A stretch of DNA of 62,592 nt, the filler included, from Choristocarpus tenellus KU-1152 (taxonomy: Eukaryota > Protista > Phaeophyceae), in assembly GCA_964200185.2 (NCBI GenBank). It is 16 parts of 16 records of this genome, joined end to end, with 100 filler letters (N's around TTAATTAATTAA, not from the genome) between each part and the next. Parts side by side here need not be neighbours in the genome. Positions count along the whole stretch, not along the records: positions 50,682 to 57,165 come from CAXNAD020008039.1; 15 more parts are not named here. One strand, 5' to 3'. The position numbers were made by a program, and so were the translations under genes. Shown piece after piece: positions 5,556 through 57,165 of the stretch (position 1 is the first letter of the stretch; every line of letters starts with the position of its first letter). The notes under the pieces are model-generated. The model was given only the letters and a program-made list of their open reading frames with translations, was not told the origin of the DNA and searched no databases.

Positions 5556-5904
5556 TATGATAGGGGTCCTTGAACTTTTTATTCAAAAAAAAAATTAATG
5601 CTCTCTCTCTCAAGGAGACATTTAATCCTAGATGGAAAAAAATATAATACATATTCTACACTACTTACCTTGCACATTTATAATAGACTACTAAGGATGC
5701 TCTGCAAACTCTATCATAGTAATTCTATAATGAAAAAAACAATACATATCGGGAGTAAACTGGAAAGTATGTTGGCGCCCAAAGTAACCAAGGTAAGGAT
5801 CACAAGCAGACACAAGAGCAAGGATAGACAGCATGATAGGGGGGATTGGAATAGGCATGGGCAGGGGGCAATAGATACGGCATGATAGGATTGAGTATAG
5901 ACAG

Positions 5905-6648
5905 ACCTTGGGGTCCCCTTGGAACTCCTTGAGTTGGTCCTGGATTAGTTTAACCTCCTCTGGTGAGTAGAACCTGGAACACAACAACAAAACCCCATTG
6001 TCACTGTACAGATTCCTCACGGGGGGGTTACGCTTGACTGAGGGAATGGGAAAACCTTGAACACAAATCAAAATTGAATCTCAACACCCCGTGTTGCAGA
6101 AGAGATGTGTGCGGCAGGAGGGGAGGGGGTGGAAATGTTGATTCGAATCCCCAACACACACACAAAGCGATCAAGAGGGGGCTGCCCAATGCATTTCTTC
6201 CGCAGTCCCCAAAAAAAATGAACAAAAAAAAATCATATGTGAAATCATCACAGTGACACAATCTCAATTTACAGGGGGGGGAAATTCTCGAAACCCACCC
6301 TACCAGAAACATGCATAGGCAGCCCAAGCACATGCAGAGACCAATCACCGCCACAGTCAGCAACAAAGTGAAGACAGCCACAATACACATGGAAACGACA
6401 GCTCATCCCTCCCCTCCAAATAGAGCCAGTTGTGAGAAGCACATCAACTACACCAACAATCGCCACACCAACAATCGCCTCTCCCACCCCCCCACCACCG
6501 CATCGTGCCTGTGCATAACCTCTAGCGGGTTGTCCTCCCACTCTTCAGGGTTGTCCTTTATGTACAGAAGAAAGTCCAAGTCCAAATCGGTGATACCAGC
6601 CCCCTGTTGCAGCGCCTCACCCCCGGCTGGCTCGTACCAGGTGGGGTC
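5905..6648 (-). CDS. Probable upstream exons of the same unknown minus-strand gene
   Basis: Exon ~6520-6648 (DPTWYEPAGGEALQQGAGITDLDLDFLLYIKDNPEEWEDNPLE) and exon ~5906-5972 (FYSPEEVKLIQDQLKEFQGDPK), each flanked by cag/gt. Their phases do not join directly, so an exon is missing or one call is wrong. Confidence 0.4.
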
Positions 6649-50581: not shown

Positions 50582-52786
50582 NNNNNNNNNNNNNNNNNNN
50601 NNNNNNNNNNNNNNNNNNNNNNNNNTTAATTAATTAANNNNNNNNNNNNNNNNNNNNNNNNNNNNNNNNNNNNNNNNNNNNCTGCAGGTCGTGGTCTGTC
50701 GGGGGGAGGGGGGGGGGGGGGATAGTGCACCGTGTGAGGTTTTTAGACAACAACCCGTGCAAATGTGTTAGGCGTTCGGAACGAAGTTGGTCGGGGAACA
50801 GTTTTGATTGTAAAGAGAAGTGTTCTCTCTTTCTTTCTTTCTTTCTTTCTTTCTTTTTTTTTTTTCGTTGCAGTATGCCCGCCTCAAGCGAGGTCAACAA
50901 CAACGGATGTACTACGCTATGTAAAGAGGACCCGCTGCTACACTTGAGGCCTTGCCGGGACTCATCCCGATTTGCCCCTTCCTCGTCGCGTGGCTCCCTC
51001 ACAGTGTAGATGAGTGGCGTGGTCCTGATCTTTGCGGATGACACCGCCGTCCTCCCTTAGATGGCAAGAGTAAGTAAGCCAGGCGGGCTGGGCTTGCATT
51101 GCTTGTAAGGGAGAGAGAGAGAGAGAGTAGTCATACTGCATTTTTATTTATTTTTATTTTCCTGGCTTTTGCACGTAGTGGGTTGGAAGGCGATGCTATA
51201 TTACATGTGATGTGTGTTTTGTGTCCGTGTGTCCGTGTGAGTGGCGTGTTTGTGTAGGAACAGCTTGATTCACCTTTTTTGTATTGAGTGTTCTTTTTAC
51301 GGGGTACTGCATTGTCTCCTTGTTGGTGCAGTATGCACGAGATACAGACTGTTCTGCTTGGCGATTTTTTTTTTTCTTGGGTGCGGTTGCATAGATAGCT
51401 TAAGAAATAAAATAATACAACCATGCGTGTATCATTTATTTATTTTTTCACTTTGGAGGGTGTTGTTTGTGTTGACAGTTTTTTAATTTAAGTTCTACAA
51501 CAGGGAAGCAAAACTGGCTCTTTTAGGTAGAGGTGACTTAAGAGAAACTAACTCCGCTACAAATTTGCTTTGGTCGGGAGTGCTCCTTGTTTCAAAATTA
51601 GGTGGGAAAAGAATGCAGCGACCTTCCTGCTGTTATTGTTATCGCTGTTACGGTATCATCTTGATGCTTTGGAGGAGGAGTTTTGAGCACTACACATCTA
51701 ACATGGGGATCACTTGAGCGCAGATTCGCTCATTGAAAAACAAGAGTGACATTTCGTAGAAACCGTGCGTTTTTTTTTTTTTTAATAGAACTGAAACCAA
51801 TTTTTCTCGTGAATTCTAACTTATATAGTTTATCACTGGTGGGGGGAGTTTGTTGAATGACTCGTAATCTCGAGCTTTGTCATGCGCGCGCGCGCGCTCA
51901 GTTGGCATTTAGAGTTCAATATAGAATATACTATTGTGTTATTATTGTCCTATTGCACCTACCTCACTCCGTTGTCGCAGTAACTAGTTCATCTCAATAT
52001 ATATGATACAGATTCTTGTATATGCCAAGCAGTCAGCAAAACATTGTGTCCCTACTCCGAAAAAAACTCGACGCTATAAAATCAATACAACTATTATTAC
52101 TAGTAGTAGAAGTAGTAGTGATATACGATCGTCATATTATCAGTACTGCTTTTCCGAAAAATTTTCCGAAAAAAAATCTATATTTCACAGAGGGACCAAG
52201 CATTATGTCCATTGTTCCTTATCATCACCTTTTTGACCCTCCTCTCCTCCATTGGGGGAATGCAATCGGAGAAGTAGATAAGAGTGAGCAATGTCCAGTT
52301 ATTGCATATTTTCATTGCATAACAATGATGATAACAAAGGTGGTTCGATGATGAGTTCAACAAGAGTGTATGGTACTCTACTTGAAGTAGTACATAATAA
52401 TGTGATACATACACCCATCGTATAATGCAGTGATTTTGTCTATGTTGCGGTCGCGTTTCGAAGAGCGTACACTGTACACGATCTGTGAGGTTTTGTCTAA
52501 ATTCTTGTGCTCCCTCAGAGCACACTGCCACAATTTATGGTGTAAGTACAGTGTAAATAGGTACCAGTCGTAACCCTACCTGTATTTCGATCCTCTTTCA
52601 GCATACAAAGAAAAATTACCCATCCATTGTTATGCGGCAACCAATTCCGGTGCATTATACTTCAGGAACCCATTTAGCGATATATTGCAGGGATACGACT
52701 ACCCTGAGTAGTACATACTATACACTCATTCTTCTTGTTAACTACTACAAAATTGGTAGTAGTATTAATGGCGTTACTGTAATGAT

Positions 52787-52820
<34 letters not shown>
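52787..52820. repeat. (AGT)n microsatellite
   Basis: Visible tract. Confidence 0.95.
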
Positions 52821-52821
<1 letters not shown>

Positions 52822-54152
52822 ACAGAAGTAGTACTGGCATTGCTCTAAAAATATTTAATATGGAAATTGAGAGCAATATCTGTCCTGTGGGAGGATACTA
52901 TTTTGGGCAGTGTACACTCACTATCGTTCTGAAAGGTGCACTCGTAGGTAGTGGAGTGTACATAGAGCAACAATAAAGTGGTATGCATGCAGTAACAACT
53001 CCTCCACAGCACATTTCCTCAGCAGCATCACCGAATGCAAGGATATGCCAATCTACCACCCAGAAGAGAGTGTAAGGCTGACAAAGAGAGGTTATGCTAT
53101 GGTGTATATTTTAACAAAATCAATCAGGTCACGACATATTGATAAGTTAGCCAATTGAGCACGCACTTCCTATTTCCTTTGGGGGAATCATCAGAGAGCG
53201 TGCACAGAAGGATACATCCAGAAATCTAGCCCGATTCTATTAATGTATGTAAGCAGACTTTTTATTTGCCACACCTAAGAGAGAATTCATAAAGGTTGAA
53301 GTAAGAAGACAAGGAGCCTTTAATGACTGTCACATAACGTCTATGAATAAAATCCAGCACATCCAAATGCCAACCAATACATACCAACACAGTAGTAGAG
53401 ACACACAACACACACACACAGATTGAACATTACTCCGCAAAAAAATGACTTCCGTGAGACAGCCCTGGTCCCACTTCACAGCACTCATTTCAGGGACTTC
53501 GGTGAGGTCTAGGTATCAACCCCTGTGACCATTTTTGAGGTGTTAACACCTACGACCCTTTTGAATTACATACCATGGCATTGCTGCTATCGGAAAACTC
53601 AGCACACATGGAAGTGCCCATGCTATTATTGACCTCAAATCCCTCTGCCCTTGTTTCACGCTGCTGAAAGTAGGAGACCACAGAGGACGAAACAACAGGC
53701 CACACTCCCAATCACAAGAACCACTATTAGCGACAATGTTTATCAACACAAAACATACAAAACATACACACAATAATAGCACGTGTACCACTGAGGATAA
53801 GTGATAAAAACATGAGTAAATACATACATCTCTTTTGACTTCCCTCCTCCCTCCACAAAAACAATAAACAGTGCTTTGACACAAATCTCCATAGGGGAAC
53901 ACGACAAAACGTACCCTCGTTTGCCAGATGATCAGTACATAGAGCCATCTCAAATCTGTGTACTTATCACACTACCACCCAGCACGTGAACGTATCCCTG
54001 ATGTTCAGGCTGTTGCCCCTAGCCCCGTTTCCACACCTTGTCTCCGCACAGCATACTCAAGTCCATTCCTGCCACCATATCACCCACCACAACCTCCCCT
54101 TCCCTCACCATGGCTGCAACATGCTGCAGAGTGGGGTGTATATAGCAGGTGG

Positions 54153-55531
54153 CTAGGAGATCCGGGGATTGAGTACCGCAATCCTTTCCAACACTTTGTC
54201 AATGAATTCTTGTCTTCCATTTCCAGGACAGCTCTCAAGAGCCTTCTCAAGACACGGTCGCCGGTCCACCTACAGCATCGCCAATAGTGAACGAGGTGGT
54301 CCAAAAATGGGAAAGTTGAAGGTAGTGAATTTTTGGGGTGCGAGTTTTGAGGTTGTGGTCGTTGGCTATCACCTCTTGTAACCTCTCACCTTATCCAGGT
54401 CCATAAGTTCATGAATGTCAAACTCTATGGGCAATTCGTCCTCATCCTCCACCTGCGCCATCATTGAAAATAACAAGTTAACTATTCAATAGAGGTAAAG
54501 AAGAATTGAGCATGAGGGGGAGGTCGCTAGGAGGATAAACATGACTCCAATAAACACCATAGATGGTTGAGCAAGCGGGACAGGAGTATTGTTGGTTAAG
54601 GTATGAAAGTAAAATTCGTGTACATACACCTTACATCTACTCCTTCACTGCAATATGTCCTCTATCTCCACGGGGTTGTACGGTCAGTTCAGAGAGGGGG
54701 AGATATTGTAGTAAGGGCGAAAGTGTACTAGGGGACAAACAGACAACAGTACCAGATGCTCACAGATTACTGTCTGGTTAGTGAACAAATTCTTGGGTCT
54801 TCCTTTCCCCTACCCTGAAAACCAGGTCTCTGCTATATAACATTACATAAAAAGCCTTCGTAAGTCCATAAATATCTCCCGCCATCGCCCCTCCATACAC
54901 ACATGCAACAGTATTTCCTATACAACGTAACTACCGCTGGAGTGTCCTCTCCATGTGACACAACATCGTACTTTTTGCAATTGCACTTCACTTCAATACA
55001 TGAAGACTACACCATCACAACTCCTCTTCTCCATTTTATCTGGAATCCCTCATTCCCTTGTTCGTCTTTCCCTTGTAAATCTTTGTCTACATGTGCCACC
55101 ACCATCCCCGCACCTTGTACATAACGACAAGTTCATGCAAAGCCTCGACCTCGACCTGAGCAATCTCCTTCAGGATCGACATATTGTACTTTCCAGTATG
55201 CATCTTGTACTCCACCTGAGGACAAACGTGTGGATTGTTCGTTAGATGGATGGTGTAAACAGCTATATTTGATATGTCGCCAACCCAATCAGTTGTTGTA
55301 GGTGATGCTTGATGAGGTCTGTCCCCGAAGTCACAAATAAATGAACTTTGCCAAGTGATGGTTTACACAGTACACAAGCAACGAAATATGCCTCGTTCGC
55401 GAAGCACTGGATTCCTTTGTCAATCTATTTGTTCTCGACAATTAGGCATCAGCGAAGGTAGTGATGGAGGAAGGCAATGCATCATAGCGTAGAGAACTGC
55501 CTACCTTGCTTGATGGCGAAGACTGAATCAT
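54153..55531 (-). CDS. Complete 4-exon gene encoding a 102-aa CPI-17/PHI-1 (PPP1R14)-like protein phosphatase 1 inhibitor
   Basis: Phase-0 GT-AG exons 55505-55531, 55114-55215, 54390-54452 and 54153-54269 give MIQSSPSSKVEYKMHTGKYNMSILKEIAQVEVEALHELVVMYKVEDEDELPIEFDIHELMDLDKVDRRPCLEKALESCPGNGRQEFIDKVLERIAVLNPRIS*. The pattern matches the recalled CPI-17 core. The start codon is the least certain part. Confidence 0.8.
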
Positions 55532-56798
55532 TGGGAAAAGTATTTCAGATGTTCGTCGACGAGTCTTTGGTGTTCCCCCAAAGTCACGGGTGAGGAGTCT
55601 GTGGAGGTAGATGTATTTAGTGAGATCTACACCAGTAAAGTGAAGGTTGGTCCAACTGACGACATATCCTGAATCTGATCAGCTGGCATCATTCTAGTAA
55701 AACTCCTCTCAACTTGGTACATGGCCCAACGAACCTAACATAAATTGATTTGAATTTTCTAGCAGCAAGTTGTTCTGGCCGTTTTGGGGTTATTGGTGTG
55801 GATTCGGATATTATATTTTTTATGACGAAATTGTGGTAGAATATCGCACATGTGCAGCAGGGGTATTCGAAAAGGGGAGACCTGAGACCTGAGAACTGAG
55901 AACTGAGAACCACAAAAACAAAATTAGAAAATTGAAGTGGAGATAGGTCTCAAAAACAAGAAAAAACAATGGAAATTAGAAAAAGAGGGTCAGCGCGTAC
56001 GTAGAAATAACCTATCATAATTGCAAATACCAAATGAAGAAATCAGATATTTGATTGGAAGAGAGAGGTGACATATGGAAATACAAAAAAGAACTAGAAA
56101 ATAGAGGCGGTCCCTTAGATCTACAAGCAAGTACAAGTCGTATATACTTAATTATATATGGAGATATTTGATTGGAAGATTAGAGGATTGATTGCTATTA
56201 GATCCAAGAGAAACTTGAAATGGTTGGTGGATTTCCATGTAGGACCACGTTCATCTATATTTATTTATCCGTCAAAACTACAACCTACAACACATCATTA
56301 TTGTTATATAGATTAAGTTGGGGGAGTTGAAGGTTGAGGTTGAGAGATAGGTGTTTCCGTTTTTGAATCAGAGAAGGATGTCAAGTTCTACATAGATCGA
56401 CGAACTTGCCTCTGTCGTCTGGATGGTACGTGGATGTGAAATAACAGATCAGGTTTATGCAGTTGAATGTGTTTGGGACATCAGGTTAAAGATCTGGTTA
56501 GATATTGCGGTCAGGTCATCTGACGCAAGGTCGTTGAACTGGACAGTGTTCATCTGCATTTAGTTATCGTTGAAGAGGGGATAGGTCGAATAAACATGAA
56601 ACGATAGTCAGTCACACAAGTTTCACGTTCAAACCACTTGTTGACCGTCTGATACGTAAGCAGGGGAGGTATTTCCTCCAATTTTTCAAGTTTTCACGAA
56701 GCAAAGAGAGCAGGATGTAATCAGCGTGAAGCAAGTACATCCTTGAAATAACCAAATCAAAATGAAAATAATTACATGAAACCAAGGAACCAGGCAAT

Positions 56799-57060
56799 AA
56801 CAGCCGATTTCAAAAATTGAGTATGGAGCTTTTCATTGAGGATGGGCTTGACCCAAAATTGACTGGGATAGAGTGTAGATATGTTTTTTGTTTTAAATGA
56901 GCATTGATTGCGATATTTTGTAAAGAAAAAGAAAAAGAAATAAAACGGGGTAACAGATTGACGGTCAGAAAAAAACATATCGATACTTTATCCCAGTCAA
57001 TTTTGATTCAAGCCCATCCTCAATGAAAAGCTCCATCCTCAATTTTTGAAATCGGCCGTT
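56799..57060. mobile_element. Foldback/MITE-like element with ~90-bp inverted arms
   Basis: 56799-56888 is the near reverse complement of 56969-57060. Confidence 0.8.
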
Positions 57061-57127
57061 CTGTGTGTTCGCGCACCCACTCTTTGACATTGGCAAGGAT
57101 GTCCTCGTCGACGCCCAGAACGAAACA

Positions 57128-57165
57128 GGGTCAAAGTATCTGGGGGGAGGGGGTGGTTTGTGAGG
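57128..57165 (+). mobile_element. Repeat family C terminus at the contig end
   Basis: gggtcaaagtatctggggggagggggtg. Confidence 0.7.

Follow-up and report, generated by a model that had tools for sequence, protein, structure and literature searches.

Gene organization of the locus

The window analysed here, to which all positions refer, is a stretch of 62,592 nucleotides (nt) from the genome of Choristocarpus tenellus, a brown alga (Phaeophyceae, PX clade, Stramenopiles). Its part 50682-57165 is the exact reverse complement of contig CAXNAD020008039.1 (6,484 nt; assembly GCA_964200185.2), on which the original prediction, made from the sequence alone, had placed a hidden four-exon gene for a CPI-17/PPP1R14-like inhibitor of protein phosphatase 1 (PP1). 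All four segments were located where it had put them, on the minus strand and in phase 0, with every boundary reading AAG/GT...AG/GTG (the slash marks the exon edge) and a total of 102 codons. Each exon is shorter than 60 codons and is absent from the default list of open reading frames (ORFs); all of them appear at a minimum of 30 amino acids (aa). The gene is not hidden, however: GenBank carries a coding sequence (CDS) on CAXNAD020008039.1 that corresponds to window 55203..54153 on the minus strand, and its 89-aa product (P0004 hereafter, "unnamed protein product [Choristocarpus tenellus]") is already tagged with the Pfam family PF05361. Exons 3 and 4, together with exon 2 from Met 55203 onwards, tile P0004 without gaps.

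We put at about 85% the probability that this locus is a small nuclear gene of Choristocarpus tenellus, transcribed and under purifying selection, whose product consists almost wholly of a PHIN domain of the CPI-17/PPP1R14 family. This analysis establishes the gene and two of its introns, as well as the fold of the product and its family membership. Its parts are as follows.

55531-55505, minus strand: exon 1, candidate first coding exon; 9 codons, ATG at 55531, donor AAG/GTAGGC
55216..55504, minus strand: intron 1, candidate; 289 nt, GT..AG
55215-55114, minus strand: exon 2; 34 codons, inhibitory motif K-M-H-T-G-K-Y-N and helix A, P0004 residues 1-30
55195..55197, minus strand: codon of the predicted phospho-acceptor Thr, Thr3 of P0004 and Thr16 of the 102-aa model
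54453-55113, minus strand: intron 2; 661 nt, GT..AG, junction 54452/55114 in sequencing run X3
54452-54390, minus strand: exon 3; 21 codons, acidic linker, L-P-I-E-F-D-I-H-E-L segment and helix B, P0004 residues 31-51
54270-54389, minus strand: intron 3; 120 nt, GT..AG, junction 54269/54390 in X3
54269-54153, minus strand: exon 4; 38 codons and TAG, helices C and D with L-E-S-C and E-F-I-D-K-V-L-E-R-I, P0004 residues 52-89
53356..54152, minus strand: 3' untranslated region; about 800 nt, covered by an X3 contig that continues past exon 4, with no convincing ORF in the ORF listing

Transcription and splicing

Three sequencing runs of one study (X1, X2 and X3), none of them recorded as RNA, hold the stretch. 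X1 and X2 carry the whole of it in single long contigs of even depth and are DNA-like. X3 behaves as RNA, because its coverage at the gene is confined to 53356-55532, with no X3 contigs over 53000-53273 or 55603-56287, and because some of its contigs skip introns. A 979-nt X3 contig runs through 53356-54266 and then 54387-54454, which, allowing for a 3-nt ambiguity, is the junction 54269/54390 of intron 3; another joins 54449 to 55111, which becomes the junction 54452/55114 of intron 2 once the cut is moved by +3. Intron 2 is retained in a further X3 contig of lower depth, and both introns are also part of the GenBank CDS. The exact junctions of introns 2 and 3 thus agree with the original prediction, whereas at intron 1 the only X3 contig, 55111-55532, is unspliced and runs continuously through the intron. 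No 55505/55215 joint occurs among the listed X3 contigs, but contig assemblies lose short branches, and the unspliced contig therefore does not disprove splicing of intron 1. The mean X3 depth is 363 for the contig 55111-55532, 1028-1308 for the exon contigs and 65 for the retained intron 2; an argument from these depths for a mostly spliced intron 1 was given no weight, as contig depth cannot rank the parts of a gene.

Homologues in PX-clade algae and selection on the protein

A phmmer search with exon 2 alone against 1.8 billion representative proteins gave two matches, from Discosporangium mesarthrocarpum (69% identity) and Cladosiphon okamuranus, and exons 2, 3 and 4 run colinear with residues 25-120 of the Cladosiphon protein. 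Further members came from profile searches (Scytosiphon, Pylaiella, Phaeothamnion, Tribonema minus, Heterococcus, an MMETSP transcript and two intron-less environmental genes), and homologues colinear with exons 2-4 are present in about ten PX-clade algae. In the alignment, P0004 is 42-56% identical to the full-length proteins and 62-70% identical to two part-length rows. The aligned PX-clade homologues (P0008 of Tribonema minus, together with P0001, P0002, P0005 and P0013-P0016) are orthologues with the same motif and the same order of domains, from which the Choristocarpus protein differs by N for D at position +4 from the acceptor residue and H at -1, and by an N-terminal tail that is shorter than theirs and unrelated to it. 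Scans of viral and metagenome contigs with a family profile (A7), both limited by their search patterns, confirmed no relative.

Comparison with Discosporangium, whose identity in exon 2 is 69-73%, gave proportions of synonymous (pS) and nonsynonymous (pN) differences of 0.81 and 0.16 for exon 2 and of 0.62 and 0.25 for exon 3; over the opening 60 nt of intron 2 the identity is 0.33. As pS lies far above pN and intron identity is only 33%, this sequence comparison indicates that the protein is under purifying selection, with saturated synonymous sites. The idea that the four segments are chance open frames is of negligible probability: exon-by-exon searches of Pfam and the Protein Data Bank (PDB) were indeed empty, but spliced RNA contigs, colinear homologues in many species, the contrast between pS and pN and the annotated CDS all speak against it, and for exons 2-4 it is already refuted.

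The same phase-0 boundaries delimit exons 2 and 3 in Discosporangium, where exon 3 has the same length and phase. Intron 2 interrupts the gene at the same position in Discosporangium and in an Ectocarpales-like locus (L002, a contig of ENA ERZ6864208, 5633-6996), and intron 3 is present in Discosporangium and absent from L002. L002 holds two tandem gene copies, both without intron 3, at the following positions of its contig.

Copy 1: exon 2 at 5633-5752, fused exons 3 and 4 at 5998-6219
Copy 2: 6450-6551 and 6784-6996

Copies of this Ectocarpales type are set apart from the Choristocarpus gene by the missing intron 3, the tandem duplication and a Ser in place of the acceptor Thr. The Tribonema minus orthologue (L004, 3001-7277), whose upstream neighbour encodes a PX-domain protein kinase, has four coding exons with introns elsewhere, inside helix A and after G-D-R, so conservation of intron positions does not extend across the PX clade.

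For this family, several of the public gene models need correction. The Choristocarpus model is probably cut at the N-terminus, and the Phaeothamnion model (L005, 2207-2821) is cut there too, starting at a Met two residues before the Thr although conserved codons extend upstream. The Discosporangium model (L001, 6001-8677) reads past the donor of exon 2 into the intron and then meets a stop; its exon 3 is unannotated and its exon 4 lies past the end of the contig. In Cladosiphon, the 182-aa model P0002 appears to fuse copy 1 of the tandem pair to exon 2 of copy 2.

Intron-less family members lie on environmental contigs (L006 and L007, from JGI 3300068088 and SRR33577138, and L008, from ENA ERZ23498679), and one of them adjoins an intron-less gene for a kinesin of 1122 aa. 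These members come from intron-poor eukaryotes, and the family may therefore reach beyond the PX-clade algae named above.

Membership in the CPI-17/PPP1R14 family

Tests of the whole domain used P0004, which comprises exons 3 and 4 and the part of exon 2 that begins at Met 55203; searches with shorter pieces used single exons. Against the Pfam model PF05361 (PP1_inhibitor), P0004 scored 25.4 bits where the cut-off is 22.4 (E 1.6e-5), with its residues 3-84 aligned to positions 35-115 of the 141 of the profile, and relatives reached 34.6 (Tribonema minus P0008), 40.8 and 24.0 bits. Searched singly against the PDB, P0004 ranked CPI-17 first at E 0.12. In the reciprocal direction, a profile built from stramenopile sequences only (A6) was searched against 177,635 PDB sequences, and its top three matches were the pig CPI-17 chains 1j2m/2rlt, 1k5o and 1j2n (E 9.8e-6, 2.2e-5 and 6e-5). 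The alignment spans nearly the whole PHIN domain and places the algal Thr on Thr38 and K-Y-D on K40-D42 of CPI-17. An earlier, fragment-built profile (A3), in which CPI-17 was also at the top at E 0.08, is superseded by the deeper A6. T-G-K-Y-N occupies residues 3-7 of P0004, with Thr3 in the profile column aligned to CPI-17 Thr38, and the positions that never vary in the aligned algal full-length proteins are +1 to +3 (G, K and Y) and, further on in helix A, an L and an E. The CPI-17 similarity that the original prediction had described is reproduced by HMMER, and with the family profile it lies well beyond chance (E 1e-5).

The exon-by-exon Pfam searches and a phmmer search of exon 2 against the PDB found nothing, but the pieces are too short to match, so these blanks do not count against the family. 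Likewise, phmmer with the domain of Cladosiphon P0002 returned no CPI-17 from the PDB; single-sequence searches with Cladosiphon are empty because the Ectocarpales branch is too diverged.

Predicted fold and comparison with CPI-17

An AlphaFold2 (AF2) model of P0004 built with A6 (pLDDT 84.5, pTM 0.72) has four helices, and its best match among solved structures by Foldseek is the T38D form of CPI-17(22-120) (1j2n; probability 0.93, TM 0.58/0.54, 26% identity), the rows that follow having a probability of 0.2 or less. In the ESM Atlas the best match of the same model is PPP1R14 (TM 0.80, root-mean-square deviation 2.1 Å over 87 residues), and the P0004 model that the Atlas itself provides resembles a chordate PPP1R14 cluster with TM 0.80. 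The best 3 of the 30 ESM Atlas feature matches for P0004 are PF05361 clusters, the nearest being PPP1R14B-like (Nematoda) and PPP1R14/14D (Chordata). An ESM Atlas search with exon 2 alone gave spurious HTH_16 matches, which were discarded.

The algal protein and CPI-17/PPP1R14A (pig and human; PDB 1j2m, 2rlt, 1j2n and 1k5o) are colinear over the roughly 80 residues of the four-helix PHIN domain. T-x-K-Y-[DN] of the algal protein falls on Thr38-Tyr41, and the acidic linker with its Pro, the I-x-E-L-h-x-L helix, the S-C turn and the F-I/V-x-x-h-L helix all align. Identity is only about 25%, the residue at +1 is Gly in the alga and Val in CPI-17, and a single basic residue precedes the algal Thr, at -3. 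The algal protein also has very short tails, being 102 or 89 aa long versus 147 aa, and lacks the long disordered C-terminal tail. The vertebrate paralogues PHI-1/PPP1R14B, KEPI and GBPI belong to the same Pfam family, and PF05361 also occurs in nematode and other animal proteins.

Several observations weigh against assigning the locus to this family and its function. P0004 lies only 3 bits above the threshold of a Pfam model based on animals, and a Pfam search with P0002 (Cladosiphon) and P0001 found no match, the Ectocarpales copies being below threshold or undetected. The Foldseek E-value for 1j2n is 0.28, and a first model, of the Cladosiphon P0002 domain (pLDDT 76), retrieved generic helical matches only, and no CPI-17, in Foldseek searches of the PDB. 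The acceptor is Ser rather than Thr in the Ectocarpales-type copies, and the biochemical support for the family comes from animal members only. Nevertheless, the Pfam match, the reciprocal profile search and the fold together establish membership in the CPI-17/PPP1R14 family, and the central reading of the original prediction, a gene of this PP1-inhibitor family in a stramenopile, holds, as do the Pfam hit and the structural resemblance that it had put forward as checks.

Start of the protein

It is proposed that the protein probably starts upstream of the annotated Met, at exon 1, and is 102 aa long. All full-length homologues have 20-50 residues ahead of the [TS]-G-K-Y-D motif, and all but that of Tribonema (Lys at -2 and -4) have Lys or Arg at residue -3. 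In Choristocarpus the codon of this Lys lies inside exon 2, directly upstream of the annotated Met, and the frame of exon 2 is open back to a strong acceptor, TTTGTCCTCAG/GTG, with no in-frame ATG between that acceptor and an upstream stop at 55365. Given the acceptor, the open frame, the lack of an in-frame ATG and the conserved Lys, coding most likely continues into an upstream exon, and exon 1 is the only phase-0 ATG...GT first exon inside the RNA-covered zone. It has the same length as the annotated first coding exon of Discosporangium (27 nt). The Phaeothamnion model, from the same assembly set, begins at the equivalent Met, and there the conserved H-K-K-S-D-S-K codons continue upstream in frame.

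Against exon 1, no spliced X3 contig includes it, the contig that covers it stops just 1 nt beyond the ATG on the upstream side, and the encoded peptide does not resemble the M-N-F with which other homologues begin. We regard as possible but doubtful the annotated three-exon model of 89 aa, in which ATG 55203 is the start codon, exon 1 is noncoding and 55216-55532 forms a 5' leader that stays unspliced. This is the model of the GenBank CDS and the one that agrees with the continuous X3 contig 55111-55532, for which no 55505/55215 joint is listed, and ATG 55203 has an A at nucleotide -3 where ATG 55531 has a C, a weak context. It would, however, make the acceptor Thr residue 3, without upstream kinase determinants, although all full-length homologues carry tails of 20-50 residues, and would leave the conserved Lys/Arg codon upstream of the Met. 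Its leader would hold four upstream ATGs, three of which would be removed by splicing of exon 1; the Phaeothamnion model is cut at the same Met; and the silence of contigs that drop short branches proves nothing.

Origin of the gene

A contig contributed by a contaminating animal or other organism, or a gene recently transferred from animals, would fit a family described mainly from animals and a short contig (6.5 kb) without another recognisable gene. Both are very unlikely on the sequence evidence, because the order of the nearest relatives agrees with the taxonomy of the algae and the protein is only about 25% similar to animal ones. Discosporangium comes first (69-73% in exon 2), then Scytosiphon, Pylaiella, Cladosiphon, Phaeothamnion, Tribonema and Heterococcus, whereas P0004 matches CPI-17 at only E 0.12. 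The DNA-like runs X1 and X2 cover the contig evenly, one of its flanks is a very abundant repeat of the same genome, and no relative was confirmed in viral contigs in a scan limited by its search patterns. The contaminant contig that the original prediction had named as its possible undoing is thus contradicted by the PX-clade relatives and by the even coverage in the DNA-like runs.

Proposed function of the algal protein

In CPI-17, Thr38 is phosphorylated by PKC and ROCK, whereupon the four-helix PHIN domain changes conformation (PMC9006046, PMC11939891), and phospho-Thr38 docks directly at the active site of PP1 (PMC9006046). By analogy, the most likely function of the algal protein is the same phospho-switch. 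A kinase would phosphorylate the Thr of T-G-K-Y-N (codon 55197-55195), the phospho-Thr would occupy the catalytic site of a PP1 holoenzyme and act there as a pseudo-substrate that is hydrolysed only poorly, and the helical bundle would hold the inhibitory loop in place, so that PP1 is switched off. The phosphate is expected to be required for binding, and the unphosphorylated form would not bind. In CPI-17 it is Tyr41 that protects the phospho-Thr from hydrolysis. The Lys/Arg conserved at -3 suggests that the kinase is basophilic, perhaps of the AGC or CaMK/CDPK type. The original prediction had stressed the reduced basic residues ahead of the Thr and suggested a different kinase; the remark on the residues is fair, but only the Tribonema protein, among the full-length homologues, has lost Lys/Arg at -3. 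The target PP1 holoenzyme should differ from the animal one, because stramenopiles are not known to have a MYPT1/smooth-muscle myosin II system.

Inhibitor-1/DARPP-32 follows the same logic, a small protein becoming a PP1 inhibitor through a single phospho-Thr. These phospho-Thr-dependent inhibitors are disordered, dock via RVxF and are unrelated in sequence, and no search of this analysis returned a match to them. An RVxF-type PP1-docking motif is carried by PHI-1, KEPI and GBPI (PMC11939891), whereas none is evident in the short algal N-terminus.

It is unlikely, though less so than an animal origin of the gene, that the protein, though a true PHIN-domain relative, does not inhibit PP1 in a phospho-dependent way in algae and is instead a constitutive binder or has another partner. 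In favour of this, stramenopiles are not known to have the MYPT1 holoenzyme that is the animal target, identity to CPI-17 is only about 25%, and the Ectocarpales-type copies carry Ser as acceptor. However, the residues shared by all aligned full-length algal proteins make up the acceptor motif (G, K and Y at +1 to +3, with L and E after them); the profile column of the acceptor falls on CPI-17 Thr38, the very residue that, once phosphorylated, docks at the PP1 active site (PMC9006046); and the best solved structural match is the phosphomimetic T38D form. These points favour the phospho-switch.

More tentatively, and with rather less than even confidence, we suggest a wider picture in which PHIN-type phospho-switched PP1 inhibitors are not an invention of animals or vertebrates. 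A vertically inherited branch of them would exist in PX-clade stramenopiles (brown, yellow-green and phaeothamniophyte algae), gating a PP1 holoenzyme unrelated to myosin phosphatase under the control of a basophilic kinase, and would have been duplicated in Ectocarpales with a Ser acceptor.

Relation to earlier knowledge

PP1 is regulated almost wholly via partner proteins, among which the CPI-17 family is the textbook phospho-switched inhibitor. The PPP1R14 family, whose animal genes have four exons, was called vertebrate-specific in 2020 (PMC7460850) and is listed elsewhere as four vertebrate genes only (PMC11939891). The gene described here lies outside that range, in a brown alga with relatives in Xanthophyceae and Phaeothamniophyceae, and one PF05361 cluster of the ESM Atlas is mostly nematode. 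No paper linking CPI-17/PPP1R14 to algae or stramenopiles was found in the literature searched, and the family is not mentioned in the preprint on 60 brown-alga genomes (10.1101/2024.02.19.579948). The databases are ahead of the papers in this respect: besides P0004, the precomputed PF05361 tag is attached to the Tribonema, Phaeothamnion and MMETSP proteins and to one environmental protein, and NCBI and UniRef give Tribonema minus P0008 the name "protein phosphatase 1 regulatory subunit 14B". With this PPP1R14B name the family was already annotated in stramenopiles, and most of the novelty seen by the original prediction falls away, as it had itself said that such an annotation would remove it. 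The result is a modest extension and not a discovery: a well-supported new family member in an unexpected lineage, with a gene model that is probably mis-started. Its value is limited by the Pfam assignment and the PPP1R14B name that databases already carry for a stramenopile protein. An expressed, conserved member in early-branching brown algae and their sister classes nonetheless suggests a PHIN domain older or more mobile than the description as vertebrate-specific allows, and for brown-alga biology it would offer a candidate node linking kinase signalling to PP1.

Other features of the contig

In the ORF listing and an Rfam scan, the remainder of the 6.5-kb contig yielded no further recognisable gene and neither tRNA-like nor Rfam families. 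Upstream of the gene, a 359-nt X3 contig at window 56322-56680 (depth about 4) suggests a weakly expressed transcript, with no convincing ORF in the ORF listing. An element resembling a miniature inverted-repeat transposable element (MITE) occupies window 56799-57060, with inverted arms of 91 nt (56799-56889 and 56970-57060) that are 92% complementary and separated by 80 nt. Its summed contig depth in the DNA-like runs reaches up to 1e5, compared with a single-copy depth of 9-20, and it is joined to different flanks in many contigs; on account of this depth and these many flanks it is taken as a very high-copy dispersed repeat, and it is also present in the RNA-like X3. Two microsatellites also lie on the contig, (TAG)n with about 16 copies at window 52787-52833 and (TTCT)n with about 10 copies at window 50823-50864.

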